Assembly (NCBI GenBank): GCA_965285935.1
Contig: OZ260663.1
Span: 104,036,001-104,100,000 of the forward strand
Source of the DNA: Ophelia neglecta
Taxonomy: Eukaryota
DNA: 64,000 nucleotides
Direction: 5' to 3'
The notes under the pieces were generated by a model. That model was not told the DNA's origin. It saw only the letters and a list, made by a program, of their open reading frames with translations, and ran no database searches. Made by a program: the position numbers and the translations under genes. Positions 3,176-63,741 of the stretch are shown piece by piece; position 1 is the first letter of the stretch, and each line of letters opens with the position of its first letter.

Positions 3176-6100
3176 TACTCATTCAAGCTTTGTCAGAAAT
3201 TTCTTTGGAAATTATCGTATTTCTTAAATTCCGCATAGTTGAAACAGACACCCTCACCTTAAACCCCTCCGCTGCCCTTGGGATCGTCCGCCATCAACAA
3301 CATAAGATGCCGTTGCACCACACTACACCACAAAACGTGGACGAAGCAGTAAGTTTAACCTCTTACAATCTTGACTAATATAAATTCAAAATAATCTACA
3401 TTACTAAAATTGTTTATTGTGGATATATTATAAAAGAATCCATTGGCAAAGATGTCTAAATGAAGGAATGTGGAAACAAGCCATGCGTGAAAATTGTACT
3501 GCGGTTTCTCGTCACTACACCATACAAAACATGGAAGACACATCCGCAAGCTTTGCGACTTTAACTATCTCTCTAACCCGTTAAAAGGGATTCATAACCC
3601 CCGCACTGTTTGCACTATGTTGAAAACTTAACGGAGATTTATCTACACACAGTGTCTATCTGTGACGCATTAACCCGGGTATTGTGCACCAAAGTTTACT
3701 TTATTTCTAAAGCTTCCATTACCATGTTTGAGAATACGCTCGAGCAGACTTGTCAGATCGCCTTTACCGAGTAAACACAAGTGTAACTTCAATAACGGTA
3801 AGTTGTAGTGCGGGATTCGCCATTGTGAGAGGTAGTTGGGGGGGGGGGGGGGGGGGGGGTTAATCATAATTATCACCGTCAAAAGTGAGGGGCCAGAATA
3901 TTGCTTTAAGTCAGGTTTGAGAGATAAGATAATGATTGTCTCCTCCTCCAAACCCTATAAGATCTGCCTTCTGTCTAAATCCATGGACATATATAGGGGC
4001 TTTAGACATGCCCCCCCCCCCCCCCGCACCAGATTAATAGATAACTATTTGTTAGGTGTATCGATGTGGCTACTTACTATAATAAAAAAAAAATGTTTCG
4101 TCAAGCTACATTGGTACCGAATCCACAATGTAATTTATAATTGTATCTGAGCCATTTAGTTATGAACCTGAGTGCACTTGTCCTTACTTCCTTCAGTGTG
4201 TCATGTGTGCGCCATTTATGTGTCATATGGCATGTACCTATGATTTGTATGTCAAGGAGTGTCCGTAGCATTATCTTTCCTTGTCCCAGGCGATCGGCAT
4301 CACTAAACAGCTGGCCTGATCAGAACCTTCCCACAGCGATCCTCTAGTAACGTCCATGAAGGTGGCTAAAACACACTCGAAAAATTGCAATAACTGATTT
4401 CCAACAGAGGAACTTTGGGCCTCGAGATAAGTCGTCAACAATCATCGTGATCCATTGAACTTGGGTCGATGATAATAGCCGACAAACAAAAATCATAATA
4501 TATTCTTATAAGCAGAATAATAAGATTTTTGCAGTTAAAAACAGGCTGTCATTAAGTATATCTACAATAATACACACTTGTGTTTTATTCACTGGATATT
4601 ATTTCTGTGCTCCGATATTCGTTTATATTGCGGCCTCTGTCTTACTTATTGGATTAAAATCCACAACATCATGTTTACATAATATTTTTCAACAGGTTTA
4701 TCGCCTAAAAGACCCAACAAAGCAGTCATCGCATCAAGCGTTTGAATTGACCGGACTTTTCCACCTATACTATGGTACATATGTGCTATACGATGTACCG
4801 GCGAGGACCTACCCTGCGGCATGTGTAACTTGTTATCAGCGGGGTTCCAGATTGATATATCAGTGGTTCATTAAGATGCTATGTTAAGGATGGGGGTTTG
4901 ATGACCGAGAACTTTTGGAATTCATCTACCAGTTAATAAATCCTACTTTTCCGACCAGTTTTCTGGAGGTTCGCATAAAATCAGCAAAGCACTAAACTAA
5001 TATTGCTTAATGCCTATTTCCTGGTTGAATATCTCGAGTTCGAAAAAGTATTTGAATGGTATACCGATAATCTGGGTTTCTGAATGTAATTCTATTGAGC
5101 TATAATCATAATATAGCTTTGATGCAAAAGAATAATATTCTTCATCTAGGTGTATTCTTTGTGTGTCTATATTCTTTGCAGGGATTTTGGGCCACTACTA
5201 TTTACAATATATTCGCAATTCAGGGACGGCTGCTTAAACTAACACTCGACGATCTCAACTGGTAAATACAGCTCTGAAAGACTAGAAGTATTGACAAGGG
5301 TAGGATGACACAATGTGCTTGTCTATGAAGCAGTTGCCTAGGTTTGTATAGCACAGACATTTATCACAATGATAAATGTTTTATGGGTCTATTTGAAAAG
5401 ACGCCCCGCCGTCTTGTTTGACCTAAATTTAAATTTGAAGCGATCTTCATATCAAAGGCAAATCGTCCGCTAGTCTCATCGGCTCCTTTAACACGTTTCA
5501 CTACACACACGTGCATGGTTAGTGAATACTAATTAAGTTAAATCATGATTACTATACATACATCTTTATTGTGAGGAGTTTCCTAGACCAGTGGTAGAAA
5601 TTAGTTCACTAGCATTCACTAGAATTTCCAAAAATATAGTGGTGAAACAAGATATATTTTGTTTTGGTACATTCATGCCACGAACAAGGAAATAGATGGA
5701 TATAAAAGTACTTTATATAACTCTATTCAGCAGAAGAGCAACGTGCTTGGACGACAGTATTGGTTTCTAATACTGGTGGAGATTGGCGCAATGAGGATTG
5801 GCATGTTTGCGTTTTTGTTGACTTTGGCAATAATCGAAGGTAAGCTAAAATTTGTTAACACTCCCGAGAAAATTTAATGTATGCAAGGGAAATGAAGCTA
5901 GTATTTTGACCATCCACAGTCGTAACGCTTTCGGTGATTTTGGGAAAGTGTTCATTAATGCCAAATTAATAACGCTGTCATAAAAAAAAATCCAGTTAAT
6001 CCACTGACCATACAAACGATTGTTATTTCTTAATCAGCCCAGCTTGACAAACTAATTTAGCCGTTACTCTCCTGAAACTAATTACTAAAGGTATCTGGTT

Positions 6101-7740
6101 TTCAGACTGTGTTGATATAGCTGAATGCCGTGATATCTGTAACCCGGGTTGTAAGCACAGAGTGTGTATCAAAGAGACTGGGGTGTGTACCGAGGGATGT
6201 GTGTACGACAAATGGGGAGATTGGTTGATAGGGGACAAGTGTGATATCGTAATACGTAAGCATGTTCACTAGTTTGTCAATTTGAAAGTAATACATTCTT
6301 TGGCTTCTATAATACATATTTACAGAAATATAAATTCTTAAACAGCTGGTAAATCCAATATATGATATATATGATACAACATATGATCATTATTAATGAA
6401 TCAAACAAATGGACAGGTATAAAACAATGCGAAAAATTAGTTTTTCATGCATGAGCATTGGCTCAAAGACCAAAATAGAACACATTATAAACAAGAAATA
6501 CACATAGTCATACATGGTTGCACAGACAATCCACAGTTATTCAATTACAAGCACATGATAATAGAAGACATAATATAGGGTATCATGAAGTAAAAAAAAA
6601 ATACCTCGGTTGCATAAAAATGCATAGCATATATTTGAGCCAGGACGCCACCGATAGCCGAAGCCGTAAGTGGTGGCCGCCCACCTCATCCCCCAACAAA
6701 TTTGAGAAAAATAAATAAATGAAAGGGAAACAAAACCAAAAATAACTAGATTAAAGGTCAGTGGCCAGTAATACAGCGTTAGTATCAACCAGACAGAAAG
6801 TTAATTCGTATTCAAAATAACAAGACAAACTATTAGCAGGGTCGACCCCGTTCCTCTTCTATTATTACAGCCAAGATGCAGTTTGGTCCCTCAGACTGGG
6901 TTAGGACCACTCCATTATCAGTTACTTCTAACTGTGTAACCTGGCAATGGAAGGAAGGATCAAGTATTACAGACAGCGCCGCTCCTTACATCGGATATCG
7001 TATATACTACAGACAGTATACTACGTCATCAGCGGTATGGGCAGAGGGAGCTGACGTGGCAGCAGGGGACTGTTTCAGGTCTACAACCAGGGACACGCTA
7101 CCAGTTTGATCTGGCTGTCTATAGAATTAACTCGGAAGAAGAAAAAAAAAGGACATTATTCATATTTCGATCACATGGAGAAATACTTGTTAGCTACCAC
7201 GTTGAAATGTAAGTTACTCTGTAAATTTTGATTGGTTCTGTATCAGTCCCACTAATGGGATTGTATACATACCCGGTGTTTTGTTTTACTGTTTAACATT
7301 TGCAATTCATATAAATTAATGAAGCCTATGTGTAACAATGTCATAGCTTAGTTAATTTTTATCTCAGTGAGTGTAACGCCAACTTCTCGAGAAGCTACAG
7401 GCCGAGCTCGTCCTGACACCGGTATCAGTTCTCTCTTTCCTTCTACGACATTGGCTCAAAACTTAACGACCCTCTATGAAAACACAGTGAAACGCACTCA
7501 AGTATCAACTGCAACACAAGAACACGAAATAGGAACAAGCAGTGTAAAGGCAAAGGCGGACGTGGCCATTGGTAGGAGCCATTCCACGATACGTCCAAAC
7601 AAGGTCACAGGTAACACGGGCGTAGTGATAGGGGGCGCCGTGGGAGGAGCGCTCGGGATATGCGTGGTAGGGGGATTACTCGTATGTCTTGGGTACGTAT
7701 GTGTGTGTACGTGTGGGTATTTGGGGTTTGTGTGATTGTA

Positions 7741-7755
7741 ATATATTAATATATA

Positions 7756-7787
<32 letters not shown>

Positions 7788-7800
7788 ACTTATAATAATA
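7741..7800. repeat. (TA)n/(TAA)n microsatellite in a receptor A intron
   Basis: atatatatat...ataataataataat seen directly. Confidence 0.9.
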
Positions 7801-8187
7801 AGGATACTAATAATATTATAGCTTTTAACATCGAAAATAAAGCAATCGGAGTGTAATACAAAGATTATAATATCTGTGAAACAATCCACATCGTTCTAGC
7901 TGTTTCGTAGTTTCGTAACTTAATCATTAAAAGAGAGCTAACAATACTTTTCAGTTTGAAGAAATATTTAATAAATGGTTACTTTCAGAATGTTTATCCA
8001 GAGAAAGAGGTCGGCAAACTCAGACGCTGAAGATCGTAATGAACACGTATCAGCCCAGTACGAAGATATTGATGTTTACAAGCGGCAGAGGGAGAATATA
8101 CCACTTGAAAATGTGAATGTTAATACACGTCCGATTGGCAATAATATTCTTCTTTATGGTAAGTACGCCTGGAACTTTGTTGGGAGA

Positions 8188-8819
8188 CCCCCCCCCCTCA
8201 CTACCCCCATCCCACACACCATTCCTCACCCCTCACCCCTCCCCATCCTCGCTAGTCCCACCCCCCACTCACTACCCCCATCCCACACACCATTCCTCAC
8301 CCCTCCCCATCCCCGCTAGTCCCATCCCCCACTCACTACCCCCCATCCCACACACCATTCCTCACCCCTCACCCCTCCCCATTCTCGCTAGTCCCACCCC
8401 CCACTCACTACCCCCATCCCACACACCATTCCTCACCCCTCCCCATCCCCGCTAGTCCCATCCCCCACTCACTACCCCCATCCCACACACCATTCCTCAC
8501 CCCCTCCCCCCTCCCAATCCCCGCTAGTCCCATCCCCCACTCACTACCCCCATCCCACACACCATTCCTCACCCCCTCCCCCCTCCCCCTCCCCGCTAGT
8601 CCCATTCCCCACTCACTACCCCCATCCCACACACCATTCCTCACCCCCTCCCCCCTCCCCATCCCCGCTAGTCCCATCCCCCACTCACTACCCCCCATCC
8701 CACACACCATTCCTCACCCCCTCCCCCCTCCCCATCCCCGCTACTCCCATCCCCCACTCACTACCCCCATCCCACACACCATGTCTCACCCCCTCCCCCC
8801 TCCCCATCCCCGCTAGTCC
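8188..8819. repeat. C-rich minisatellite, about 10 units of ~62 bp, intronic
   Basis: Unit approx CCCCACTCACTACCCCCATCCCACACACCATTCCTCACCCCTCCCCCCTCCCCATCCCCGCTAGT. It explains the Pro/His- and Gly-rich spurious ORFs at 8117-8710. Confidence 0.95.
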
Positions 8820-10570
8820 GGATTTATATTAACGGGTGCTCTGTATTTGATGATAGAAATTTAATTGCGACATGGTAAGGCGAAAGAAAAGTGTGTCAAG
8901 CGACATATGACATGCGGGGCGATTTATATGGGGAGGAAACCTTACCTTTTGTTATTAACTATGCGTTACACATTAAATTTTAAGATTAGGCCTATATATA
9001 TTCATATGGACATATTTGTGATGTACGCATTCTTTTCCAGAAAACATCGACGTGGCACAATACGAATCTATACCTCTACCCCGGGTTGTCACTAATGACC
9101 AGTATGAGAACCTAAGTCTAGACAACAATAACTGAATGAAAACAAAAATCATCACATCACGTGCTATTATTTGTGGGCGTGTTTAATGTTTGCTATGTTG
9201 CCCAGTGCGAGGCTTCATCACTTTCCACAGAGTTTTTTAATGTATCTAATAATGATTTTTTTGTTTACCACAAGTTGAAGTAATAGTGCCTTTGTCAAGA
9301 CATTTAAAATACACAAATCAGAAGTTTAAACTTTGTTCTGTTAATTTCCTGCGTTTACTTATCTCGAGGTCCGAAACTGGAATGTATACTATACATTGAG
9401 CGCTGTTCCTAGATATATATAAAAGTACGAAAAGGAGACATTGTCATCACGTTTATATGCATATGGCGATTTGAACGAAACGTTGATATCTTTATGACTT
9501 TCTTACAATACAATCCGCGTTCAGCGCATGCTTTAAAGCGTTATTTACTAATCTACTGCACAGGCACAACAATATTACCACTGACTCTGAAAGAATTAGT
9601 TGCGGACTCGTATGGTATATATCCGTGCAGTATAACCAACGCTGATCGACACTCGCCAGCATTAATTGATATATTACAGCAATGGACTGTCAGTTTTCCA
9701 TGTATAACATACCACAGGAAACGGCCATTATGGTGCTCTATTTAAACAGGTGTCCTGGGATCGTATTGAAGGCATACATACTTGTTTAAATAACGACTTT
9801 CTATGTTTGACAAGACGCTCCAGATCTCAATTGTGCGTTTGCTGTTTTATTAGTAGACTACCGGTGCATCGTGTCAACATGGTGGAGGGTTTTTTGGCAG
9901 TGGGTAGGTGAGGCGGACGGAGTTACTGGCACGCTCGTTTAGGAGGAATCCTTACGCTAGTTCGACATGTGCGTGTTTAAAATCGTCATCTTAAAACTGA
10001 AATCAAAAATCGTAGAAAATTAATATCTCTCTGGGAATCATGCAAACAATTCCCTTTTCAAGCCTCTTAACTATAAAACACATAGTTAATACCTCTTCCT
10101 CCTACTTCTTATTTGATCAATTTAACATCAATGTCATCCTGTTTACGCAACGCTTGTTAAGAAGAATAAAGTCCGATCGACTTCACTTTTTGGGCATGTG
10201 CGTTTATGAGCAATTTGCATTCAACGTAAAGATCGTCATGTTGTTTAATATCAATAGGCTTTCAGGGGTAGCTTGTGGGCGGCAAAGTGGAAGATCGTAT
10301 TTTGGTGGCATAGTGAGGTTTATATGGCCATTTTAAGATTGTTTCTATATAGCGAGTAACTACTACCCCCCCCCCCTCAACCAGGGACCCCAACCCCTTA
10401 TTTTTCATAAGTTGGTCAGTAGACCCATTTCCGGGTAATGAATAACGGAACATCGTTCGGCTTATAATTATAGTCCGAACAATAATATGGGATTGAATCG
10501 TCTGTAACTTAGGGTTTTCTGTGAGTAAGCTTATTAATGTTATAAATAATTTGTTGTCAGCAAATATAAT

Positions 10571-10606: not shown

Positions 10607-11492
10607 TGAGGAGCATGGCGTTTATTTGTACGAATCATTTGAATGATTGAATTTGGTTCCATGACTCTTACCATGATGTAGTATTTTTTTTATATCTGCT
10701 GTCAGTTGTAGCTATATTTCATAAATGACTCAAACATGAGCAGCAGTCATGTGTGCGAGTGTGACTTCTTTATTATTGAATTAATTAATTAGAGACTCAT
10801 TATAAATTTATGGAAAAGAGCTTCGATTACTTGCGAAGCACTCATGTTTTGCTGCGAAGATCCAATATCAAGCACATTGAGGGGGGAGATGAGGCAGACA
10901 ATTTACTTAGAGGTAATAGCGACCGTGGTAGTTGATGCCCAACTAAATATATTTCTTCTTAAGTTTAAACCAACTAATTGAGAAAAAGTTTACCCGAGAA
11001 TGTTGCAATGGGCCCGAGGGGGAGCACTCGATAATACGACAATACTCCTATAACAAAAGATTTTGCAATGAACAATTTTTCCTTAGCGAGAATTAAGCTG
11101 AATTATATACACAAACACACGAGACATACTGCAAACCACGGGGATTGAAATATACATGGTTTACCCGGCTTTTAAAGAAACATGATTCCTTCTGTGTGCA
11201 ACAAACTTTTCTGATCGGTTAGACCGTTTTATCATTTTGAAATGATTTGACCCGAATAATATATGCAAGAGACCAGCCTCCTAACAACTTTTCGGCACAT
11301 GTTTGAAACCACACTGCACAAGTGGTTTATTTGAGTCTGGTTGTTCAAATATGGCTTTATTGCAATCATTAGCTATAGTATTTATTTATAATGTGAATCG
11401 AAATGCGAAACAGAATCATCCCCACCCCCCAACTTAGCCCTACCCTCCAAACCGATCACTAAATTATTACTTACATATAATATGTGTGGGAA

Positions 11493-12975
11493 GCCCTGTA
11501 TGTGGCGGATATTTGCTGGATGTACTGCACCTGGCAGTACAGCAGAATAATATGGCCATCCACGAGGCCGTCTACAGTGCAGCATATTGAGGTCAGTCTC
11601 GCGAGGTCTCGCGGGAGTGCAAAATAATGGTGTGCATTAGTTTTTAACACCTACGAAGTAATAAATACTGCAATAGCTTAGACTTATATATTTTGTTCAT
11701 CCTGGTGCTGGTGTATCTGCTTCACACTGATATAATATCATAATAGAGTGGCTGGTTCTTTTTACACAAGTAACATTATATGACACTATTAAGGAGATTT
11801 ATAGCTCTTTTCTATTTACTATGAAGGGCCCTTTTTACACCTCTCTTTTGTCTTGTATTTATTGAAACATTTTCATTTTTTAGTCGTCGCTAAAATGGTG
11901 AGAGAGCTTATACCAACAAAAGGCAGATATTAATCTCATTTCTTATTTGGCCAATGTTTGTTTTGTGTTCTGACTGGAAAACTGTTTAAATACTTCTTAT
12001 TGCAAATTATTTCAGTTTGGGTGGGGGGGGGGGGGGTTATTTATTGACGTGAGTGTGCCTGTGGCTACCGGTTCCTGACGATTTCGGACCAATTAAATAG
12101 ATTATACTGTCTTGTTTTGTCTGCCGGGTATTCACTCCCGTCTCTTCTAATTGCTTGAAATAACATTATGAATTAAATTATAGGATTTAATTGGAATTAT
12201 AACTTGCGGTTAATGCTTTCTCATACACATTGTAATAAGGGCTTATTATCAGACACCCATACTTAGACTTATACTTCACAACCTTAACGGTACTTAACTC
12301 GTGTAAGACTGGATTTATTGACTGCGTTAGGCAGCTCAAATATGGTTTATTTGACGCTGTTATCCTCAGTTTGTTAAGCATGCCTTTACTACATTGAGTT
12401 TTTATTGGGATATTTGAAAGGACGCTCCACTGCATTGAAAGCTATCAAGTCGTTTATTTTGTAAATACATAAGGACGGTTCGAGGGAGTCCCTTTGTGGG
12501 GATTTCTGTAGCCTTAGGGCAGAAGACGTTATGGGGTGCCGTAGTGTGTGAGGAGTCAATACTCCCACAGATTTCCTGAATGCAATCCCTTTTCTGGAGC
12601 TCAGGATCTGCCCCGAAGCATTCACGATATCAAGGTTATAGATAGAGCGTGCGGCAGTGTCGTGAGCTGTGTCAATATCTATCAGTGTAAACAGACGTGT
12701 TCACAGGCTGTGAATGAAGCCTACTTTATATTGTAAAATATATGAACCCCTGTATCGTCTAAACATGGGCCGGGAGACAAAAAGTCCTCTTTTATGGAAG
12801 TTTTATCATGCCCCTTTAGGGCAGAAAGGGGTAACCTCGAGACGATGGGTATTTCTCCTACCCATCTGCCTCGCGATGAGATATTACTTGCTGAGAGCTT
12901 TCCCCGATACATCGTACAATATAGCCGTATTAAAAGACAAGGCTAATTAGGGACGGACTATTTGATATCTTGGGG
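11493..12975 (+). repeat. ~1.45 kb segment duplicated at 29523-30925 (copy 1, downstream of receptor A)
   Basis: Collinear blocks such as GGATGTACTGCACC, TCTCGCGAGGTCTCGCGG, GACGATTTCGGACCAATTAAATAGATTATA, GCTCAGGATCTGCCCCGAAGCATTCAC and GCTTTCCCCGATACATC are shared with copy 2. Confidence 0.9.
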
Positions 12976-15900
12976 CGGGGGGGGGGGATGTGGGAGAGGT
13001 TGTGAAATTATATTCAATTTGTAGGGAAAAATTAGTTTTTTAAAGCACGCACCCGAGGCCTTGTTTGGTTTATGCTAGCGTTGGACAGGAATAGCGGAAT
13101 TAACCGGGATTTGATATCTGCTCGAAACTTACCACCATATATTTATTATATTTCCCACACAGTAACTTATCATCATATAAACGGATATCAAATTTGTTAT
13201 TTAAATGAAAAAACTGAACTTACGTGCAAATAATGTATAGGTGGATAGAACAAGGCCCTCATCTTTCAGCCAATAGGGCATGCACCGGCGTACGCTCGTA
13301 ATGTGACCAGCGCGTCAGTAGAGGAACGACAAGCAAATGGAAATTAGCAATCAGGAAAAAAAACGCCAAGTGAAAAATTACCTTTGACAAATTGGTGTCT
13401 TTTCAAATCTTTATATGCATTGGCATTGACAAGGAAGTGGATGGAATTATATTAATACTAAAAAAGAAATATATATAAAGCCCATCTTATTGTAGACTCA
13501 CACAATTAATTAATTGATTAATATAGATATTAAGTATTTTCCCGTTATCATAGGAAATGTACTGCAGCCAATGAACTAATATGAGAATGGAAGAGAAACA
13601 TTTGTTCCAGTTCAATAAATATTTTCATTTTGTGCATGGATGATAAGAGCGTAACATTTCCCTCAGTCCCAATAGCCATAATAATCCAAATGGCTTATTA
13701 AAATAAATTTGATCTTGGGCGCTTTGTCGAATCGCCCCTTTGCCTCTTAAGGTTTTCGGCGCACTCGAGACACCGCAGAATCAAAGAGAAGTGAGTGGAT
13801 GTGAATGAACGCCTGCATCGTGTAGACAGAGGGGCGGAAGGTGGTCATTTAAGGGATAGGGTTTGAAAGGAGGGCAACGATCGCCCTGGTACCAGCGATC
13901 ATGTTAAGGATCCGCCCTTCAATGACATGACAGTTAGACTTGCTATTCAGATTAAAGGCTCAGCGATTTGGCTAAGGTTTAAATATGTTTAAGGCAAAGC
14001 GCCCAGCCGTGACATCGGCTCTAGCGAGGTATGTTCTTATACACGGGTGATGAATGACGCGTTCTATATTTGTTGAAATTTAAGTCACAATCCAGGAAGA
14101 AAAAGGTATAAGCCACTCTGTACTGCCACAGAGTACTTGGTCTGGAGGATTAAAGGGAAAGCGCCCAGCCTTTCCCTCGGTTCTGTCGCCAAACTTCCAC
14201 TTACACACATGGAATATACAGCAATAATATATATTGATTAGGTCACAAACCACGAAGTTTACCACACACCAAGTCATTAACCAAAGCAGACAATTTCGCA
14301 GGGAGAACTCCCTTTAGGTATACTAAGTACAGGACATGGATGCCGTGAATATATGTGTATTCGTGAATGTGCTTGCTTTAGCGAAATCACAAGGTAAGCC
14401 TATATTTTGAGTCAATATCATCTAAATGGCGCAAGTTATTTATCTACTGTACCCAGATTGGTGTATAGCACTATAAAAATTCTCTCGACTAGGTTAGGGC
14501 ACAGTCACTAATTTCCAGGTGGGGGAAGGGGCGGGGTGGTTGATAAAGCGTGTATACAATTGAATTTCAATTGATGACCCCCCTGCATATAATTGGCAAT
14601 TAAACGGGATGCCCCTCCCCCCTCTCCAAATATGAGTCCGAATAAAAATGGGTACTCCCCTCCCCTTATCAATAATCATAATTTAGTGATGCTGAATATT
14701 AACTAACAACTATTTGGAGGCAATATACCTTAAAAATGAGACCCAAGGCCAATTTCAACGTCACCTCTTGGTTTCTTTAGATGACGTATTATCAGTGTTT
14801 ATTGAATTTCAACTGAATATTTGTATATTAAGACACCAGAGGATTTACCGCAAACATTCGTAATTTTTAACCTCGTCAATAAATGATGTTGTAACCCGGG
14901 GCACACCGTAATCATTTGGAGATATGCCAATTTAACCGGTATAGACAGTGCTTTACGGACAACCCAAGTCAAACCTTAAATTAGCTTCACCAATTTGAGA
15001 ATAAGAAGGGTTATTACACTGAGCTCCCCTCTTAAATAAGTAGGTCTAAACAATATTCAGTCTTGGGTCACCCAATCATTTTCTATACTCCCTTTTTTCC
15101 TAAATAGCCATAGGTTCACGCAGTGTATAAGAATGCCCTACTCTAATTGCCATCTCTAGTTACTCAATCCCATTATCTAGGAAGTTAGGGGTCATATAGA
15201 GCCAGAAGATGGCCATTGTAGCGTGGAATTGTTGTCCACTCTGATTCTCATAAAGTCAGCCGCGCTTCGTTTTGATTAACTCCGAGCGTCTTAAGCGACA
15301 CGATTTAACCATGTGGGTAAAGCTTTTGAGATGGAATTCAAAGTCGTAAAGAATAATGTTTTGGGAAATCTCTTGTGACAACAGGAGATCTTACTTGGAT
15401 GAGAGAGCTTGGGTTACCTACGAAATAATATGACTGTCTACATATAACATTTTATCATGTAGCCAACAATCACAATATTATTATAACCAAAAAAGTTAAA
15501 AAGAACAGCATCATTTTCATTTTCCCAATTTTTTTGCACTGAAAGTCCGTCTCAGCAATTTCACCAGAAGCCTATTCAGTGTGTTCCACGCGTATCCATT
15601 GTTGATAATATACTGTAACATATTTAGTTTATTCTATTTCCGGTGTCTCGGAAGCTATAATCATTAGGCAAACAACTCTCGTTATTTGTCAATGTAAACA
15701 TATTGTATACTTATGTGTGTAGCATGTTCGTTAATTCTGTTTCCATAACGATTTAAATGCATATATAGTTTTATAAATTATCTCAAGACGCAGTTCCTAG
15801 ATACAACTCCGAGACACAACAACTAGTTTTAAAAGTTTTTGCCGAGGTTGAATAGCAAAAACAAAAGAACTAATGTTAATTTCCCGATGCAACCCTACAT

Positions 15901-17088
15901 CAAGCTTTTAATAGTTACTTATCGTTTCCGTCTGTGCCCTGGGTTATGTCGTGATGAATCAATCAATCAAAATTATTAGGAAAATTGCCAATTTTTTATA
16001 TCTTATGTATATAGTTGTCCTACGATACAAAGTGGGCAATATTAGACCAAACACCCTGTTGGGTTCCGAGGAGTAGATTGTTGTGATACTGGCCAGGGGG
16101 TTACGTTAAATTAGGTCATAATAACCTATTTAATATACATTTGAGAGATGGAAATGGATAATGTCGGATGAAGCTTTAAGGCTAGAGAGAAGTAGCAATT
16201 GTAGAAGGACGATAGATGTCTTGCAAGATGATTTGATGAACTCAGACTTGCATTGCAAGCAGATATCAAAAGAATTGCAAAATATGTGTAAATTTAAAAT
16301 AATGATAATAATATAAACATATTGCGAAAATGGACTTCAAGCTTTTACCGCTTAACGAAAACAATTAGAATAACAATGGACATGAGCATAGAAAACAGTT
16401 TTGAATTGGGCTACTACAGCCCAAACAATTAGTATAAGATTGATGGATAAAGGACCCATCAACCAATAACAAACAAATAAATACCCAATAACATTACTTC
16501 AATAACTCACACACCTGCAAACGGGTACGTTAATTTTCGATTAAGAATGTATGTTAGTAGTTTGCAAACAATTTCAAAGAATAAAAATTCAGCTTCAAGA
16601 TGTTATTTTTTTTAAAAAACTTATTATGCATAAAGTCTAAATGGTTTCAAAATCTTCACATACAAGGACAGAGATAACGATATTTCTAAATACGGCAATA
16701 CCTGCAACTTGTTATTAATACATCCTCAATTAATTTAGGAGTACAATGCTCCAACTGTTGTAACCGATAATCAGTTACATCTGATCATTCTCATTATGTG
16801 CCGTGTATTTGCTTCCAGACTGCGGCGATGCCACTGAATGCCGTGCCGTCTGTAACCCTGGATGTAAAGACGGTTTGTGTGAGAGGGCCACAGGGCTGTG
16901 TAGTGAGGGGTGTGACTTCCAGGAGATGGAAGACTGGGTGGTAGGGCCAGAATGTGACATTACAATACGTGAGTATGTACTATGATAAATATGGCATTAT
17001 TAAATACTACTGTGAGTTGATGTTTTCTCATGCGCCCCCTCGGCGTAGCGTATGTATATATTGAAACAAATCTATATAATTATGTTAT

Positions 17089-17539
17089 TATTCTAAACAA
17101 AACTCAAGTTTCTTTCGTTCCAATTTTATTTCGTATTTCTCAGACCATGTGCTTTACTGAAACAAACAAATTACATAAATACACTGCATGACATTACAAT
17201 ATGACTAGACAATTACAACGGACACACGTTTCTCATTATTAACTCATTGCTTTGACACTTACCGAATTTTATGGCTTCTAACATTCTAAGTGCTATTCTA
17301 ATTTTGACACACGACCATCTAAGACGCTTGACTGGCAGAAAAAGACCGAGTGGCTAATGAAGCTTGTGCTCTATCACAAACTGTGACGTCACCGGTTTGC
17401 GCTGCCTACGACAGCCAAATCATATGACACAGGATAAGCACATCACAAAGCGCGCTCCTGCGAGCAAAGCACTAATTACTGGCAAGTAGTATGGCATGGC
17501 TCCGTCCATATGGAGTAGCAGCATGACTTGACCATTACA
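17089..17539 (-). repeat. 3' LTR of the BEL/Pao element
   Basis: Direct repeat of 23769-24219 (offset 6680); minus-strand ends TGTAATGG...TAGAATA. Confidence 0.95.
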
Positions 17540-17926
17540 CACCGGGCCCCAAATTGGGAACCTTTGACCAATTTACATCAACAATGGTCAATTAAATTTT
17601 TAGAATACAATCATATCGATTATACGGTAACATAGCATTAGCTGTACAATTACAAATACTAGAGGCATACGGTAACGGAGTCATCTTGTACATCAAACAC
17701 AGTTCTACCTGTGGATATTATTATTTAACATACTGTACATACATACACTTATACACGTAGTGCAATTACTATTATCACAGTTCGAGGCATTAATTTTTTT
17801 TACATTACATGTAGTTACATTAACACATTAATATACAACCACAAAGATAGATCTAGACGTCTCTCAGAACCCGTAGTTTTATTACAATTCATATTAGCTT
17901 GAAATGACAGGCATACATTATTTGAA

Positions 17927-23700: not shown

Positions 23701-23768
23701 AATCCTGGGACTTTCCAGACTCTAAAACTCTAAGTCTCTCACCTCGTGGTAGCCAATTCGTAAATGGA

Positions 23769-34162: not shown

Positions 34163-34180
34163 GATGATATTTTGTTGTTA

Positions 34181-36180: not shown

Positions 36181-36381
<201 letters not shown>

Positions 36382-39057: not shown

Positions 39058-44346
<5,289 letters not shown>

Positions 44347-45182
44347 CTGGTAAGAACCTTTGGCGCTATACCTCAATGAAATCATATCTAGAGTATAAGC
44401 AATGTCCTTGGCGCTTATATAATATAATAACATTGAGTCTTTTTTTTTCAATTTTCATGTTCACGCATTTTAGTTGATTAATTCATTATAGCTTGAGAAC
44501 TACACTTTGTTGTATGGCTGTGCATTACTAGGGCAATGGTCACAGTGGTATTTTTTATTATATATATCCAGGTTCAGTACCAATTTCTTCACGAGGTGGC
44601 GCTGAAGTGCATATCAAGATATGACACATACGCAAAGTTTCAGTGAAAGTAGTGTCCGTGTTTCCTGAGGTTTGCTAACATTGCGAATTTGGATCTGTGT
44701 TAGATTATGATTTATAAGACGTGGATATATCAGTATATATAATGTCGTCAAGTTTCTTAATGGACGTTGAAAGACAGATACATTTTACTGGAATATATAA
44801 GACCATTATACGATTAATGCCCTGGGCATTCGTAGACCCGTGTAATGCCCGTAGATTCATAAAGCTAATTTGTATTACTCACTTTCCAATTCCCAAAACG
44901 CATTGTACAATTTAATTTGTTAAGGAAAAAAAATTCAAAATGGTAGTTCCTGTGAAGTAACTGTCAGTTATGATAATGTTCTTTCCTAAAATATGTTTTG
45001 TTTTAGCCTCATTTTATATTGGTGTGTGTCTTAAACCACTTGAATATGTTAGACTATGTGTATCAATTGTATCAGCTAAGACACTTAGTTCTACTAACTT
45101 AACACCAGGCATAAATCATAAAATATAAACCGCGCACAAAAAACTGCCACTAAAGAGGTTTTGTATTTACTGAGTTTTGCAT

Positions 45183-48304: not shown

Positions 48305-49297
48305 ATGAACACGTCTATTTCTACCCACCCCGGGTTTTCTGATTTCACGAACACCACTGTTTATGTGACGATCGGAGATTGGGTATTAGTTACCTTTCAA
48401 GGCCTGGTCACTGTCAGCAATTTACTAATTAATTCGCTGGCTCTGGCAGTTCTGATCTACGGGAAGACTTACCAGAAGACATTGGGGGTGTACATGATCT
48501 CACTGACTTGTGCAGACCTTGGACTTGGCCTGTTTTTTCTGCCTTACAGTTTTATAGGAGGAGCGTTTGGAGAATGGCGACTTGGTCATGGCCTTTGTGC
48601 AGCTGCGTCTCACACAGGACGCCTGTTTTCCAGACTCTCTGCGATTTAACTTACCCTGCTCTGTTGTGACAGATGTGTTGCTATACGGAAGCCTTATTGG
48701 TACAATGAAAAAGTAACGGTGAAAACTGCAACCACGCTTTGTCTAGTTGGGTGTATTAAAGGAATTCTATTAGAGATATTTCTCGTCGCAATATCAAAGG
48801 ATTGGATCTATGAGGATTTTTTATGGAGTTGTCGTTCGTTGTATTATAGCGGCCCTCTTGAATACTTATCCAGGTTACTCATTTTCCTAGTGGGTGGCGG
48901 TTGTTATATGACAATCGGTGTGTCTTCAGTACAAGTTGCTCGCGTTGTTTATCAACATAGACGCCAGATAGCAGCACAAGACAACATCGCAGGACATGAA
49001 AATCAGTCGCCAATAATCGAAGCTTCGATCATCGCCTCGTTTCAGACAGTATTCTTGATGGCAGTCTCCATGATTGTAGCGGCCTCACCCGCCCTCATTC
49101 TTGCCGCTTTACCTAAAACGAATGCTTTCCGGGTGCATACTATCTTCGTACCTTGCACGTGGATGATTTATTTGAACTCTACACTTAACTCTCTTATATA
49201 TACATATAAAAAACCTTCATTTCGTCAAGATCTGAGGAACTTCATTAATAAGTTATTGAATAGGCCAGTCCCGCAAAATGATATAGAGCTACATTAA
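48305..49297 (+). pseudogene. Intronless rhodopsin-family (class A) GPCR with one premature TAA
   Basis: ORFs 48263-48649 and 48719-49297 are in the same frame. Motifs: N-glycosylated N-terminus (MNTS, NTT), TM1 INSLALAVL, TM2 SLTCADL, WRLGHGLC, DRCVAIRKP (DRY-like), TM7 NSTLNSLIY and helix 8 FRQDL. TAA at 48647-48649 lies within TM3. Confidence 0.9.
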
Positions 49298-56687: not shown

Positions 56688-59600
56688 ATGGCTGTCGTGC
56701 TTCCAACCATACTCTCAATTGTGATTGTTTATTGGACTTCTGTTAGAGTTGCAGGTACGTTTTTTATATAATCTATTTGTTTATGTTTGAGTCAGATTGT
56801 TATCAAACATCTAAGTACAGAGGTTTACGTTGTTACGTTGTTTGGTGTCTATTTCCTGCGTTAAGCCTCGGGCTGAATAAGCATAAACTATAGTGCCCTT
56901 CTGTATTTCATTTCGAATAACTTTCTATGAACTGATTATTAATCATTTGCCGAAAGACAGGTAAAAAATGCACAAATGAGGTTTTCTTTACTTGAATCAA
57001 TGGAATATGTATGCCATACGCAGCTTATTCATACCTATTTAAATCGCAAGTATTTCATCTTTTGTTGAAAGGCTCTGGCCCTAGTATCGCTACAGTCTCC
57101 ACTAAAATAGTGATGTATTTTTATAGGCAAGTACGAACAGTTTGTCGACATCGCAAAACAGACAGGCTTTAGGTATTAATACCCTTGTCAACGGGTACAA
57201 AGCATTGTGGACGTGATAAGATTTAATTGGCTCAATTATTATAATAAAATAGAAGTTTCCAAGCAGGATTCAATGTATGATCTACGTATATGACAGTTAA
57301 CTTACTGTGATGTTCTAAATGAGTCACCCCTTCCAACAAACAGTGATCAATAGTATGCACTGTATTACAACATGTGGTATTATAGCATGATAAATTGGGT
57401 TAGGCTAAGAATATTTCATGATCATTTACAAGTTTGCGAGTACTAGCCCAGTATAGGTCTGTGTATCGACCGAAAGTCCGCGTAATCGAAAAATAATTGC
57501 GGCGAGGTAGTAGTGCGACGAGATTGTCACTAGGTTTGAGGGAACTTGTGCCCAAGACCGGTGACAAAACTAAATATCGCCATATTACCATCTTATTTTT
57601 ATTCTTGTTGGTCTTATCCAAAAGCTGCTCTGTATGGGAAAAGGCTTTTCCTGTGCTTTGTGGACTTCATCAAGGCATCCGATCTCATTAACACGCATAT
57701 CCTCTGTTTTAAATTAATCGAATCGGGAATACACGGAAGGGTCATCGACACCCTCCGAAATCTTTTATACTAAAACCAGGTACAGAGTTAGGAGCACAGA
57801 GGGTATTACTGATCTCATTAAATGTCTGATTGGTTTAAACAAACCAGGGTGGAAATGTGAGTACCGATCTCTTCCTTGGATATTTGGCCGATAAGAAAGC
57901 CTATCAGGCTAGATCAGGAGGATCAGGGTATTGTTATTGATGAGGATCTGATCCTCTTACACATTTACTGTGGGCAGACGACCTTATTCTATTGTCTGAC
58001 TCAGCGAATGGTCTACAGTCTCAGGTCAATTGCCTATCTACATTTTGTTCAAAAATAAATGATTTTGGGAATATGTTTTGCAGCAGACAGTAAAAATGAA
58101 ATTAAATTTGGATTTGATCACGTTATTGAACGGGTTCAACAGTACAAATATATAGGCAATATTCTTCAAGTTACTGGTGATATTTTCAAATCACATTATG
58201 TATATTCAAAAGACAAGACGTTCAAGACAATGTTTGCATCTAGAGAATGTACAAAAGCATTTGGTAAGCTACCACTAAATGTTTCACTTTCTATATTTTA
58301 AACCTGTATTAAGCCAATACTTTTTGTATGGCAGTGAAATGTGTGGCTTCCGCCCATCTGCATGTAGTGTTTTGAATACCATTCACTTAGGTTATCTTAA
58401 GTATGAGCTTTGTGTAAAGGCATCTACTAGCACGTGTGCAGTGTATGGGGAGTGTGGAGAATTGCCTCTACATATTGATTATACAGCAACGTGATAACAT
58501 ATAAGATATTTATTAAGAACTTATTAAGAACTTATTTTACAATTAAAATGTCTTGTGTCCTGGAACCATACGTGAGACATATAAGTGATTTTAGTATCGA
58601 CAGGCGCTGTCGAAATGTCGTTTAAGTAGTCATAGTCTCGAAGTAGAAAGAGGCCGGCATACCAGGCCAAAGACTCGCTTACACCTGTGTATATGCAACT
58701 GTATGCGAATGTATTCACTATTCTTATATCTCAAACCTATTGAACATGATCCTATTTTTGACCTAAATCCCTCTCTCTTCCCGATTATCACATTACATGC
58801 TTTACTGTAATATAGGTTCTTGTCGATATGGCAATGACTCCGAAAATTGTGCGTTTCCATGTCGCTGTATCGATGGGATCTGCGACCCTGACACTGGAGA
58901 CTGTCGTCCTGGGGTGGAATGTGAAAGATGGAGTCCGGGTAATGTGCAGTGGACCGAGCCAGGATGCGGGTTTGGTAAGGTGTCTCCGTATTTATTTAAA
59001 ACAAAAACATGCATTCGATGATATGGAGGCAATTGCCCTGTGATCATTTCAGTGTTTCTATTTCGTGATACATATAACACAAAACAGTAAATAAAGCGAA
59101 ACCAGAAGATCAAGAATATGCTTCCCCATTCTTGTGGTATATGGAATAAATGTATGAACTAGTTTTCTTTTATCTGCCGGGCACAAACTTTAGTTGGTCT
59201 TCATGAAGTTGGGCCGTACTTAACGGTTGTTAAAACTATATACGCATTATCAAGGCAGTTGAAAGTATTCGTTTAAAAAGTGTACAATTGTTGTAAAGAC
59301 CAATGTGTTGTGTGACATGTCATGTGACATGCAACTAGAAAGAAAGAAGATAAAAGTATATTTAACGTTTCAGAAACCAAGCCCTATTTTAATACTTTGA
59401 TTAATTGAACTACAAATTACATCTGGATTCCTATAATTCACATGAAGTAATGTAACACAACAATTCATACAATAGATCAATCAATGCATTAATTAGTGAA
59501 TAGCTATATTATAAACACTGATTGTCAACATACTATGATTTGACGTCTGCTCTAACTTGAACAGGTAATGTGGCACTTGGTAAAGAAGCGTTGCAGAGTG

Positions 59601-62600
59601 ATTTTCAATACGGGAAAAAGAGACTGGCTAATCTTGCGGTAGATGGTATATCTACGGAGAGCACAGATGGTCAACACTGTTCATATATACAACAGGAACA
59701 AAACATGCTTTGGTGGATGGTGAGACTTGGACATCTGCATATTATAACGAGTGTATTAGTGTATGGTGGCCATGAAGGTATAATGCCCTGTACCATTTGA
59801 TATATCTATGAACATATATCTTAATTGGTGTTCAGGTCGGAATTTTAATCATCAAGTAAAGTATATCTGGCAGAATAAGGTTTAAATTGCAAACGATATG
59901 GCTTATTTCCAGGTTACCCGGTTAACTTTGTTACCAGCATAGGAAACTACTCCGATGACCCATTACTTAATGACTACTGTCAGTATAGTACACTCATCAA
60001 CAATAACAATACACAATACACGAACGTTACATGCTTACATGGCGCGCCTATCATCGGGAGTAACGTGGTGTTGCAGGTATTTGAAACTTCCGACTTAACA
60101 CTATGCGAGGTGGTTGTTATGGGACGAAGATATATAGGTAATTCACCTTTTTTCTAGGCATACATACATTAGAATGTTGAATATTTTATTTATATCAAAA
60201 CGTTGAGCTGACAGGACGACATATATAAAATATAAGGGCATAAGTCAGATAATTCACACTGGTTCTATCCCATATGCCACCACTAGCGATTAATACTATT
60301 CATTTAGCATTATTCAGCCCTATATTTTGAAATAGCCACGCTCGTTGATACCAACTGTAGGTAGTCTTAAACGAAATAATTCAGTTTTGAAATTGCCCCA
60401 AACAATTGTTACAAACAATTGCCAGAGACGTGGGAACACCCTTTGTACTCACTCAATGGACTTGGGAATAACAGTTCAGATTCTTCGTCTTGGCGTGGTC
60501 TTTGACTGATATAAGTGTATACCATTTTCTCCATTCTATTGTGTTATATATGTAGATTGCTCTGACTGTCCGGAGACCAGTACATGCGATGTCTACCATG
60601 GGTGTAGTAAGTGTCCTGATAGGTTTAAACTTCCCGACTGTAAAGGTAGGCAGTTAAGTCGACAGTGTTACGCAAACTTACAAGTCGATTTCAGTTGAAT
60701 TAGCCGTTTATGAACAGGTGTATGGCAAGTTTACAGTTGCTAAATAAACCAAACAAGCATTAGATATATAGAGCACATGTGACAAACCAAATTAATAGGA
60801 CAACATGATACGAAGCTACATGCTTAATGGTCTGTGTGATTTTGAGTACAGACGTGGAGTTAAAAATTAACAGATTTAACAGGCATGCCCAGAAAGTTTG
60901 TTTTACATTCCAAGAACATTCTCCTAACAAAGTAGTTTCTGATAAAGAATCGATTTTTACTAGCAAAGACTTCATAAAGACGCATGGGAAATAAGTCAAA
61001 AGGCTTCGAACGTATAATTGGATAGATGATAAGGGAATAATTTGATCTTAATTTGGACATGTGTTTCGCAAAGTTGTATATATTGGGTAAGGGAATACAT
61101 ATGGGTACCGTTTTCTTTGCCATTTTTGTCTTAGCATCGGTGCCTGCGTTCCCCACGCCATTTTCCTGTGCTGTGATAATGATATATAATATATACAAAG
61201 GTAGACCTTTTGTTTATTGTATTTCTTTATTTATTCAGAATGTGTTCCAGGGAAAGTTGGAAAGAATTGTTGCAGTCCACATTGTCTAAACGGGGCATGC
61301 GAAAAGAAGACAGGAGTCTGTACTGAGGGGTGTGCTTCTGATAGTAATATGATGACCTGGACTGGGGAGCAGTGTGATGTGCAAGCAAGTAAGTACAACA
61401 CTACTCTTAATTGATATAGGTCCGTTGACAAAGCACACGCCACTTTGAGAAAGTGGGTAGCGTACCCACATTGTGGAGGAATGTCATGTCATTGCGATCT
61501 GATAACATCAGGTACAGACGTATTGTAAGAGCAGAAGCCACCTTCTCGACATTCCCTGGAAGGTAATTCAGAAAGCCAAAGACGTCATATGGTATTGAAA
61601 TGCTTCTTTATTGGTATGATAAGACACCAAAAATTCAAGACTCCCCTCAAGACTGGGTAAGAATCCCATGAAATCGTCTGGCATACATCAGGTATGACAT
61701 CACCGTAAGCGTTTGCAATGCTTTGCAACAAGCATTGAACACTCATTGCGCACACTGTAGATGCAAACGTTATCCCGGAAGGGGTTAAAGTTTGGCATAG
61801 ATTATTTTCATTTTATTTTCTATTCATCACTCCCCTGCCAACCGACTCATTGACTGGCACTCTCACTGTCTTTGCTTTATCCTAGTCGTTCGTAGACTGT
61901 GCTTTATCTAGGGCTTTATAATCATAGAAATATTATTCACTGATCGATTTGTTCAGAGGCATGTCTCATACCATAGACTATTTAAACCGCTTCTTATTGT
62001 ACCCATTTGTACTCTAATGTTAACTCTAATGAATTCCTGTTCAAACAAAGCTAAAGATTTAATCATGAAGAGCCCATTTAATCCGTCTGATATCATCAGG
62101 AAACAGTAGCCACAGGGCTACCTATGTAAAGGTATAGAACCTGGGGATTGATACTTGTGGGCCTGAAATGAATCATTCTTGAGTATTGACTTTAGCTCTG
62201 TCTGCCGGGATTCCATTTTTTACTGTTTTTGCAGATGCTACGACGAAGAATCCGCTACAGACAACTACAAATGAAAAAACGACAACCTTACCAGCAATAA
62301 GAACCTCGAAGACAATACCAAATATAACACAATCCACGACACCACCATCGAGTGACGGCAGCAAGACCAGTAGTGTATCATCAAGCGGGGCGACCGTGAA
62401 GGGCGATCCGTCATCGCAGGGCTCAGGAGTAAGCGCGGCTGTGATTGGTGGAGCTACTGCCGGTGTCGTGGTTTTCGTGGCAGTTATAGCGGGATTAATG
62501 GTTTGTCTAGGGTGTGTGGCTTTCTAACGTCCTAATTTATGTGTTGAAAACATACTATCACACGCAAAGTCGATACACAACGTCATATACCTTTAATTTC

Positions 62601-63741
62601 TCTTCACACGAAGAACAATTATTTCATGGAAAGGGCGTTCCTGTTCACTTCCTGGAGACAGGAAACGTGAATGTAGACTTAATGCACATGTTACTTTCTT
62701 TTGAAAAAGAAAGATATAATGGGCCGGTTTGTTGGCTGTTATGTTCCCACCCCCACTCCAACCCACCCCCTCCCGTAATCACGCTCCAAACACAAAGACA
62801 AGCACACAACCGCGGCAAACATTATGGATACTAACTTAGCTACTATAAGGGCCCGGAAACTTGATGCTTATCTACTGTTAGGGTCATGAGACTTTATGCT
62901 TACCCCCCTTTTTTATTCTAATGGAAACTAAATTGTCTCAGCGCGAGATGTTAGGGGTGTGATATGAACCTGCCTAGGACAACTTGTGTTCTTGCTAATT
63001 ACCTAGCAAGCCGTGACTCATATGGCGTTATATCTGACAAACATATTCCCATCATGTGGGTTTATAAAAGAAAGTGCTACTTAGTTAGGGTCAGGCTCGT
63101 CCACATTGTTCCTGCCCAAAAAAAGGTGCGGTTTGTAATTCCTCCCAGGAATAGGCATTTAGGACAATGTAAAATTGATGACAAAACAAAAATATATTGC
63201 TTTAATATGAAGGAGGAGGGGGAGGGGGGAAGGGGGGAGGCCGGGGCTACGAATGAGTTGGAATACCTCGCAACATCCTGTCATTATTGTGTTTTTTTTA
63301 GGGGGGGGGGGGGGAGAGTTAGTCGTCTAGTTTTTCTTTGTATGCATGTTTGTTGTAGTTCATTTTGAATAATTTCCTAATTATTGAAATCACACCTGCT
63401 ATATTAAGTCGTTTTTGGTATCTTCATCTTCGAAACAGATTATATCTCTATTAATGTCACGAAATGACCTTTGAATACATTAATTCTGTTCAAAGTACAA
63501 TTGCCCAACATTTTCAGGATGTATATTAGAAAATTAAGGAAGATGAAGACTCAGATAGAGCGCCCGGGTTCTGCCTCTCAAAACACCGGTAGAGACCTCG
63601 GCCATGACTCTGGTCATTCCCCAATACCGTCATCTCCACTGTACAAAGATAACGACGAGCTGCAGCAAACGACCTTTGGCATTCAGGACGAACGAGCGCA
63701 TGCGTATGAGCTACCAGAAATATCAACTACCAACCAGTATG
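56688..63741 (+). CDS. Receptor C: signal-EGF-F-type lectin (fucolectin/F5-8C fold)-EGF-EGF-mucin-TM receptor with tyrosine-motif tail; last exon beyond the window
   Basis: In-frame GT-AG exons: 56688-56754 (MAVVLPTILSIVIVYWTSVRVA), 58816-58974 (EGF-like), 59565-59777 (NVALGKEALQS...ANLAVDG...C...WWMVRL), 59913-60137 (...C...C...LTLCEVVV), 60556-60645 (Cys-rich), 61239-61388 (EGF-like), 62235-62511 (T/S stalk + TM AVIGGATAGVVVFVAVIAGLMVCLG), 63518-63741 (LYKDND, AYELP, NQY). No stops or frameshifts found. Confidence 0.88.
57600..58490 (+). mobile_element. Degenerate non-LTR (LINE) reverse transcriptase fragment in intron 1 of receptor C
   Basis: Across frames: LFLCFVDFIKASDLI...KLIESGIHG, LLWADDLILLS, VQQYKYIG, LYGSEMCG and AVYGECGELPL. 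Confidence 0.85.

Follow-up and report, generated by a model that had tools for sequence, protein, structure and literature searches.

Receptor genes with tyrosine-tail and phosphatase cassettes in a tandem array of Ophelia neglecta: a probable reading of one 64-kb window

What kind of locus places three receptor-like genes with unlike ectodomains and similar tails around a receptor protein tyrosine phosphatase (RPTP)? The question comes from a 64,000-nucleotide stretch of contig OZ260663.1 of Ophelia neglecta (C5:104036001-104100000, hereafter the window), in which genes A, B, and C had been predicted, from the letters of the DNA, to be three working receptors of an immune locus, with variable sensors on a fixed SH2-recruiting tail and with a complete RPTP as a linked gene. 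We searched the assembly (a 762-Mb eukaryotic genome in 223 contigs, of which C5 is 115.9 Mb long) for paralogues of the exons in the window. At a probability of roughly 0.6, we think that the window covers one part of a large tandem receptor family, restricted to its lineage, with two swappable cytoplasmic cassettes, and that within this part gene C is functional-looking, gene A and probably gene B are dead, and the RPTP is truncated. The observations in the original prediction were confirmed, and its interpretation was partly supported. The candidate intronic swap point, a terminal tail exon, the reconstruction of an RPTP that has no ectodomain, and the pseudogene calls are new from this window.

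Three genes and their tail cassette

Every exon that had been named was found on the + strand, with an open frame, AG/GT borders, and the phases that it had been assigned. The signal, cysteine-rich (Cys-rich), FN3, and lectin exons both start and end in phase 1 (the borders were checked codon by codon). The exon for the stalk and the transmembrane segment (stalk-TM) runs from phase 1 to phase 2 (GG|GTACGT in gene A and GG|GTGTGT in gene C), and the cytoplasmic exon has one base after ttcAG at its start and ends in phase 1 as QY G|GTAAG. Thus, the basic layout of three co-oriented genes, with phase-1/1 exons, a common stalk-TM exon, and a tyrosine-rich cytoplasmic cassette, was confirmed.

The cassettes of the three genes are homologous. 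The cytoplasmic exons of A and B are 52% identical, and the tail of gene C is tied to both of them via paralogue L030, which has YEDID where gene C has YKDND. For the stalk-TM exons, similarity relative to composition-preserving shuffles is high for A and B (z = 12.5) and lower for A and C (z = 4.1) or B and C (z = 4.7); by the same test, the stalk-TM exon of gene C is also similar to that of the RPTP (z = 6.8). By comparing the flanks of diverged paralogues, we found that the cytoplasmic exon is followed, 0.4-0.9 kb further 3', by a conserved terminal exon that was not part of the original prediction. A codon split between the two exons gives QY|E, as had been proposed. The terminal exon, which ends in a stop codon, reads QYExL-x10-YE[D/E]V in 16 of 17 copies, so that the complete tail has five conserved tyrosines, each followed by glutamate (YEDI, VYExP, QY|E, and QYExL-x10-YE[D/E]V). 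The tyrosines of the cytoplasmic exon are conserved over 28 copies; the spacing from YEDI to YExP is 18 residues, and the second motif has a proline at its end.

A profile of 28 tail exons had no accepted homologue among 1.84 billion representative proteins, so the tail cassette may be a lineage-specific signaling module. The only match, a marginal one (E = 7e-4) to P0001, an unnamed protein of 272 amino acids from an ENA metagenome contig, was not accepted as a homologue. P0001 is a membrane protein with four PEYEDI(H/K)E… repeats, and its stretch VPSDPQAHEYEDI resembles DVPSDPQPAQYEDI of the tail family.

How strongly are these modules conserved? From pairwise Nei-Gojobori comparisons, the median dN/dS was 0.37 for the cytoplasmic exon (251 pairs), 0.28 for FN3 (153 pairs), and 0.35 for the Cys-rich module (99 pairs); these values are approximate, given that the pairs are not independent of each other. 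All of the modules, including the tail exon, appear to be under purifying selection, and the excess diversity that had been expected of the ectodomain was not seen.

Gene A (5791-9135, + strand) consists of a signal exon (5791-5839), a Cys-rich exon (6106-6255), an FN3 exon (6871-7208), a stalk-TM exon that ends in phase 2 (7368-7692), a cytoplasmic exon that runs from phase 2 to phase 1 (7989-8158), and a terminal exon (9041-9135). The splice phases were read directly, and the terminal exon comes from the comparison of paralogue flanks. Relative to the intact paralogue L024 and to gene B, the FN3 exon has two deletions, one of 20 nucleotides (nt) following 7055 and another of 2 nt within the A-run near 7145. 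Because of these deletions, and because its reading frame terminates at 7107, gene A is a pseudogene. Its cytoplasmic exon also has NTRP at the position of YE[I/L/F]P in the other copies. The intron between its last two exons contains a tandem repeat that is rich in proline, histidine, and serine (8160-8830, …PSPLPIPASPIPHSLPPSHTPFLT…), with several open frames on both strands; L024 has the repeat too, at another length.

Gene B (14336-27698, + strand) has a candidate signal exon (14336-14393), a first Cys-rich exon (16819-16968), a first FN3 exon (24275-24559), a second Cys-rich exon (24737-24889), a second and last FN3 exon (25080-25435), a stalk-TM exon (about 26500-26729; its acceptor was not located), a cytoplasmic exon (27023-27192), and a terminal exon (27604-27698) that reads (E)NRDVVQYESLILPQLFSNDDYEEVNLDNNN and then stops. 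There are two lesions. In the last FN3 exon, relative to g011 and g012, one C is missing from the C-run at 25381-25383, and this 1-nt lesion shifts the family-consensus frame …TYYADRKATLDATTLAG|GT. The other lesion is in the (TA)n run at the end of the stalk-TM exon (26710-26729), which is longer by one TA unit than the runs of L003 and L004; the additional unit is also present in paralogue L002. The extra TA turns phase 2 into phase 1, so the tail would be out of frame. We checked both sites against DNA contigs from three runs of one sample, which is possibly the assembled one, so this check is not independent of the assembly. At 25380, the majority of the read depth has the window's version and a minority has the extra C, which may come from a paralogue or from another allele; over the TA run, no indel was reported. 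Gene B is probably a pseudogene. Poly(A) signals occur from 240 nt downstream of its stop codon onward, so gene B seems to have its own 3' end. Read joints from 26921 to 30039, and the reverse, were distrusted because their short side is 22 letters and lies on an 18-nt direct repeat.

In gene C (58816-63741, + strand), a Cys-rich exon (58816-58974) is followed by an F-type lectin in two exons (59565-59777 and 59913-60137), two more Cys-rich exons (60556-60645 and 61239-61388), a stalk-TM exon (62235-62511), and a cytoplasmic exon (63518-63741). The gene is intact within the window; its signal exon was not located, and its terminal exon lies past base 64000. Compared to paralogue g030, gene C has no gaps and no stops, amino-acid identities of 87-99%, and a pN/pS of 0.42, and it looks functional. 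Thus, two of the three tail genes that had been taken to be working are broken. At the nucleotide level, gene C and g030 are 97-99% identical in the ectodomain exons and 93% identical in the stalk and tail. With introns counted (window 58700-63800 against L031/L032), the 5' half is 95-99% identical and the half with the stalk-TM exon and tail is 90-93% identical. This step in identity suggests a mosaic history, by gene conversion or recombination between paralogues.

The proposed ectodomain modules were examined by profile and homology searches and, for the Cys-rich module, by a structure model, all of which were run exon by exon rather than on joined proteins. FN3 is secure: three open frames within 5.5-31 kb match PF00041 in Pfam (best E = 5.8e-7), and tblastn places the domain at 6876-7146, 24280-24579, and 25085-25381. 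A protein search with an FN3 open frame had no match within its length limits, which exclude full-length relatives, so this negative says little. The F-type lectin was also borne out, as the exon at 59561-59797 matches FBP32 (3cqo, E = 4.5e-5), Sm-hPAF (3le0, E = 1.7e-4), and a fucolectin-related structure (2j22, E = 8.9e-3). Pfam's F5_F8_type_C gave only E = 0.07-0.23, and the second lectin exon alone had no match in the PDB, but it ends in LCEVxV, which we take to be a motif typical of the F-type lectin fold. At what we presume to be the positions of the fucose-binding His...Arg...Arg triad in F-type lectin alignments, the alignments to FBP32 and Sm-hPAF give tyrosine in gene C for the His of 'CTH' or 'THT' and glycine for the Arg of 'NRGD'. 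The tyrosine is also present in g030, g021, and g022. Membership in the fold family is supported, and fucose binding is not. Solved F-type lectin domains align with the first lectin exon at E = 4.5e-5 to 9e-3. Compared to FBP32, eel agglutinin, or the lectin domain of Sm-hPAF from Streptococcus, the domain in gene C has replacements at two triad positions (His and the first Arg) and is one module of a membrane receptor instead of a soluble lectin.

For the module that had been called EGF, the MEGF/SREC-type cysteine pattern stands, but there is no significant match to EGF. Its consensus is ECPxGxYGxxCxxxCNxxCKxxxCxxxTGACxxxCxxxxxGxWLxGDQCDI, with 7-8 invariant cysteines in 19 copies. No EGF family in Pfam matched at E <= 0.01 (the best was EGF_STAB1-2, E = 0.31), SCARF1 was the sole match in a profile search of the PDB (E = 0.48), and the AlphaFold2 model was unusable (pLDDT of 50). 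The known receptors of multiple-EGF type that come closest, which act in engulfment and scavenging, are CED-1, Draper, MEGF10, and SCARF1 (SREC). These are also single-pass, with the cysteine pattern CPxGxYGxxC...C...C...TGxC...W.G..C and with short tails that signal through tyrosine motifs (a predicted role in the family described here). The tail of Draper carries an ITAM-like motif (ITAM being the immunoreceptor tyrosine-based activation motif). The family differs from them in that it has one to three Cys-rich modules, which alternate with FN3 or flank the lectin, and in that its tail has no detectable homology in the 1.84 billion proteins. Also, we found no match to EMI in Pfam and no NPxY in any tail exon that was read.

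Family size and the exchange of cassettes

The genes in the window belong to a large family. We counted 25-27 copies of the A/B-type (B-type) cytoplasmic exon, at 99.47-100.96 and 103.6-104.6 Mb of C5, and 26 of the C-type cytoplasmic exon, at 99.7-104.5 Mb, for a total of at least 50 tail copies, all of them on C5. The ectodomain exons are more numerous and are again confined, or nearly so, to C5: of 582 FN3 candidates at least 150 were scored as FN3 exons, and the 414 lectin candidates include at least 149 scored exons. Phosphatase (PTP) exons with the WPD loop number at least 150 (scored of 279 candidates) and are nearly all on C5, at 95.8-101, 103.6-107, and 110.6-112.7 Mb. Among the matches listed, megabase-scale arrays of PTP and F-type lectin exons also occur at 5.4-6.9 and 16.6-18.9 Mb and on C7 at 89-91.6 Mb; the tyrosine-tail genes occupy only part of the PTP/lectin arrays.

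To compare architectures, we took 20 kb for each of ten family members and mapped their exons by tblastn. There is one (Cys-FN3) unit in g019, there are two in g012, and there are three in g005, g011, and g016. Three units are also present in g029, with a C-type stalk-TM exon and tail. The heads of g021 and g022 are hybrids of the form Cys-lectin-Cys-Cys-FN3, with a B-type tail, and g030 is a copy of gene C. In g005, a C-like stalk-TM exon precedes a B-type tail. Because these ten paralogues mix one, two, or three (Cys-FN3) units, lectin-only heads, and lectin-FN3 hybrids, we conclude that modules were reshuffled among paralogues, as expected of the modular cluster that had been proposed. Evolution by birth and death is supported as well: besides A and B, there is a frameshift in an FN3 exon of g012, there is an in-frame stop in g016, and further copies are broken, including the stalk-TM exons at 103635972 and 100964098.

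The tail, however, is not fixed. The same types of ectodomain are also found on tandem phosphatase cassettes, with an apparent common swap point after the last FN3 exon. Close copies of the RPTP's stalk-TM exon lie at 104.21, 104.46, 104.56, and 103.64 Mb. At the first three of these loci, FN3 exons that are 79-90% identical to those of gene B lie 2-2.5 kb upstream of the RPTP stalk-TM exon, and no tail exon or B-type stalk-TM exon lies in between among the matches listed. Similarly, many PTP exons are preceded on the same strand, at a distance of 3.5-8 kb, by a lectin exon (such pairs include 97381291/97384811, 98170395/98174215, and 104137722/104144203). We also compared the DNA of window 25436-31098, which begins just after the last FN3 exon of gene B, to the genome. 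Positions 1-512 match at 84-85% beside the FN3 exons of the RPTP loci at 104.21, 104.46, and 104.56 Mb. In the tyrosine-tail paralogues, the same match extends to position 1388-1445, and their matches also cover the stalk-TM, cytoplasmic, and terminal exons. The two kinds of gene share about 510 nt of the intron that follows the last FN3 exon (25436-25945, + strand), and from there on, about 0.5 kb into the intron, the cassettes differ. We read this boundary as the probable point at which cytoplasmic cassettes were exchanged.

The phosphatase in the window (31099-44643, + strand) is real, as the original prediction had it, with Pfam Y_phosphatase in 11 pieces, the expected motifs, and a TM exon. 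A Ser/Thr-rich stalk and TM exon with a phase-1 acceptor (31099-31368) is followed by the first phosphatase domain (D1; 31726-33752 plus 36181-36724), by the second (D2; 36843-39097), which has a degenerate catalytic motif, and by a last exon at 44497-44643. D1 has KNRF, DYLNAS, DFWRMIW, KCEQYWP, and WPD (33606-33752), HC|SAGVGRTG split between 33752 and 36238, and QTRE|QYEF (QTxEQY) at 36381/36488, and it is catalytically plausible. The best match of the catalytic exon is to RPTP epsilon/alpha (E = 3e-23), with sigma and LAR next. There is a tandem duplication inside the gene (34977-44400, + strand, with a period of about 4.9 kb): the stretch from the D1 catalytic exon through D2 is repeated in two copies, 34977 to about 39880 and 39881 to about 44400, which are 86-96% identical, and the second copy has a frameshift in the exon at 41392-41626.

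Where are the signal and ectodomain exons of this RPTP? None was found in 27700-31098; signal-exon candidates at 29729 and 29772 were rejected, as neither has a usable donor. Instead, this interval contains an intergenic module (29515-30948, + strand) whose usual place is between consecutive genes of the array. A second copy lies between A and B at 11486-12985, and others lie upstream of family genes; here the module abuts the RPTP. Window 30952-31092 corresponds to the 145 nt just 5' of the RPTP stalk exon at 104.21 Mb, so that, at a junction near 30950, the intergenic module is joined directly to the sequence upstream of the stalk exon. At the L002 locus, between the end of the module at 104570276 and the stalk exon at 104563050, there is a stretch of about 7 kb with the 5' and ectodomain exons of an RPTP gene. 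This stretch of about 7 kb is absent from the window. The simplest reading is that the signal and ectodomain exons of the RPTP were lost by a deletion of about 7 kb. Because the A-B-RPTP composite recurs at 103.64 Mb with 94% identity, the deletion would be older than the duplication of the A-B-RPTP block.

So, the RPTP is more than the linked gene that it had been taken for: it belongs to the same superfamily, whose sister RPTPs have ectodomain exons of the family, and it has lost its outer part here. The arrangement also recurs: for 20 of the 25 A/B-type tail genes, the next 40 kb downstream contain an RPTP on the same strand (among the matches listed), and blocks of one to four tail genes are followed by an RPTP. 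The RPTPs of this family resemble known tandem RPTPs (alpha/epsilon, LAR/sigma, and CD45) in their D1-D2 layout, in which D1 looks active and D2 is degenerate, and in the FN3 exons in the ectodomains of the sister copies. They differ in that there are hundreds of copies on one contig, in that lectin and Cys-rich exons lie upstream of many of the copies, and in that the window's copy has no ectodomain and has the internal duplication.

A possible mechanism and the alternatives

To explain these data, we propose that the family comprises type-I membrane receptor genes that were tandemly amplified nearly entirely on one chromosome-scale contig. Each ectodomain module (MEGF/SREC-like Cys-rich, FN3, or, in two exons, F-type lectin) would occupy its own phase-1/1 exon or exons, and therefore modules could be gained, lost, or recombined with the reading frame kept. 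The last ectodomain exon would be followed either by a stalk-TM exon and two tail exons with five conserved tyrosines in an acidic context, or by a stalk-TM exon and a tandem phosphatase with a plausible D1 and a degenerate D2, and the cassettes would be exchanged by recombination about 0.5 kb into the preceding intron. The RPTP downstream of gene B would have undergone the deletion of about 7 kb before the segmental duplication of its block. At the protein level, binding of ligand would cluster the receptors, Src-type kinases would then phosphorylate the YE-x-[I/V/L/P] sites, and these would recruit SH2 proteins, with the terminal double-tyrosine motif perhaps working like an ITAM. Sister receptors that share the outer part and have a phosphatase of their own might oppose or tune this signal, as in paired receptors.

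This last step leads to a more tentative idea, which is that the family is an invertebrate counterpart of paired activating and inhibitory receptors, with one lectin/EGF/FN3 repertoire placed on either an ITAM-like tail or a phosphatase and with the pairs arising through the recombination about 0.5 kb into the intron. We consider this possible, though on balance doubtful. Like the KIR, Ly49, LILR, SIRP, and CD300 receptors of vertebrates, the family has related ectodomains with opposite signaling outputs (the opposition being presumed here), and it has tandem clusters, rapid turnover, and many pseudogenes. Unlike them, it has no Ig or C-type lectin domains, and its presumed inhibitory arm is a covalently attached phosphatase instead of an immunoreceptor tyrosine-based inhibition motif that recruits one. 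The comparison is an analogy only. If the idea is true, then symmetric phase-1 exons and an intronic swap point would together show, in concrete genomic terms, how one sensor can be rewired to opposite outputs. More broadly, if the family is expressed and functional, it would be among the largest invertebrate receptor repertoires described, with hundreds of genes on one chromosome. Our literature searches turned up no lectin/EGF/FN3 receptors whose cytoplasmic cassette can be either a tyrosine tail or a phosphatase, and no RPTP expansion of this kind, which, given the incomplete coverage, is weak evidence. The window itself is mostly a record of turnover, with two dead tail genes (B probably), a phosphatase without its outer part, and one live-looking lectin receptor.

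Several points count against a slice of a working two-cassette family. The exons of all models were joined on the strength of splice phases, splice consensus, and conservation among paralogues; the coordinate-based comparison of paralogues used the best 150 matches listed per query; and the sister RPTP loci were compared by their coordinates. The pairing is also not universal, as the matches listed include no RPTP for the C-type tail genes at 101-103.6 Mb. As for signaling, the strict form of the ITAM (YESI-x10-YENL) is present in just 2 of 17 copies, those of gene A and paralogue L024. The EGF assignment of the Cys-rich module is weak, sugar binding by a lectin that lacks the canonical fucose-binding residues is uncertain, and, with so many broken copies, part of the family may be inert.

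The alternatives account for less of the data. That the locus is as originally predicted, with three working receptors on a fixed tail beside a complete RPTP, is suggested by the common tail cassette, the differing ectodomains, the conserved tyrosine motifs, and the F-type lectin domain, but this is unlikely given the frameshifts in A and B, the RPTP's lack of signal and ectodomain exons, the replacement of the tail by a phosphatase in sister genes, and an ectodomain that evolves no faster than the tail. The lesions themselves might be errors in the assembly, as might the 4.9-kb duplication in the RPTP, in which case all four genes would be intact. Two of the four indels are in short simple runs (the A-run of gene A and the (TA)n run of gene B), a minority of the depth at 25380 has the in-frame extra C, and the two copies in the RPTP, at 86-96% identity, could be haplotypes that were collapsed. 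Yet a 20-nt deletion is atypical of consensus errors, the majority of the depth at 25380 agrees with the window, no indel was reported in the TA run, and the extra TA is found in L002 as well, so we regard this explanation as quite improbable.

Another way to account for an RPTP with no signal exon of its own is that one transcription unit comprises both gene B and the RPTP, and that its ectodomain exons are spliced either to the tail, which has its own stop and poly(A) signal, or past it to the RPTP stalk-TM exon. A single gene would then encode both partners of a receptor pair. Both stalk-TM exons have apparent phase-1 acceptors (for gene B, this is taken from genes A and C), and the layout of the composite is the same at 103.64 Mb, where the identity is 94%. 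This seems very improbable because the junction between the intergenic module and the 145 nt upstream of the stalk exon is more simply explained by deletion, because the last FN3 exon and the TM exon of gene B are frameshifted, because the copy at 103.64 Mb has a stop in its stalk-TM exon, and because poly(A) signals begin 240 nt past the stop codon of gene B. Finally, the family could be expressed and serve in cell adhesion, in gamete or self/non-self recognition, or in development, and not in the sensing of pathogens. Adhesion receptors typically contain EGF, FN3, and RPTP modules, the solved structures nearest to the catalytic exon include RPTP sigma and LAR, the canonical residues for sugar binding are missing from the lectin, and all modules are under apparent purifying selection. 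But the copy number, the tandem turnover, and the many pseudogenes are more usual in recognition repertoires than in housekeeping adhesion genes, and we consider such a role rather unlikely.

Other features of the window

The window has a G+C content of about 40% and contains introns and retroelements. Between the RPTP and gene C is a frame for a rhodopsin-type G protein-coupled receptor (48263-49297, + strand) that is unrelated to the receptor family. Pfam 7tm_1 matches both of its halves in the same frame; it is intronless, with one in-frame stop at 48650-48652, so it would be either a pseudogene or a gene with a very short intron. Upstream of gene A, open frames on the + strand at 154-2272 have reverse-transcriptase-like and tyrosine-recombinase-like motifs (…HSFRIGRATQLA…), which suggests a DIRS/Crypton-type element; these frames matched nothing in Pfam at E <= 0.01. 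The first large intron of gene B contains a long terminal repeat retrotransposon of the BEL/Pao type on the - strand (17927-23700), with gag at 22189-23700 (Pfam DUF1759) and pol at 17927-22234 (Pfam Peptidase_A17, DUF5641, Integrase_H2C2, and RVT_1). The nearest database relatives of its pol are from bivalves, abalones, a hemichordate, a nemertean, and fishes, with at most 49% identity. With its long open gag and pol frames, the element looks young.

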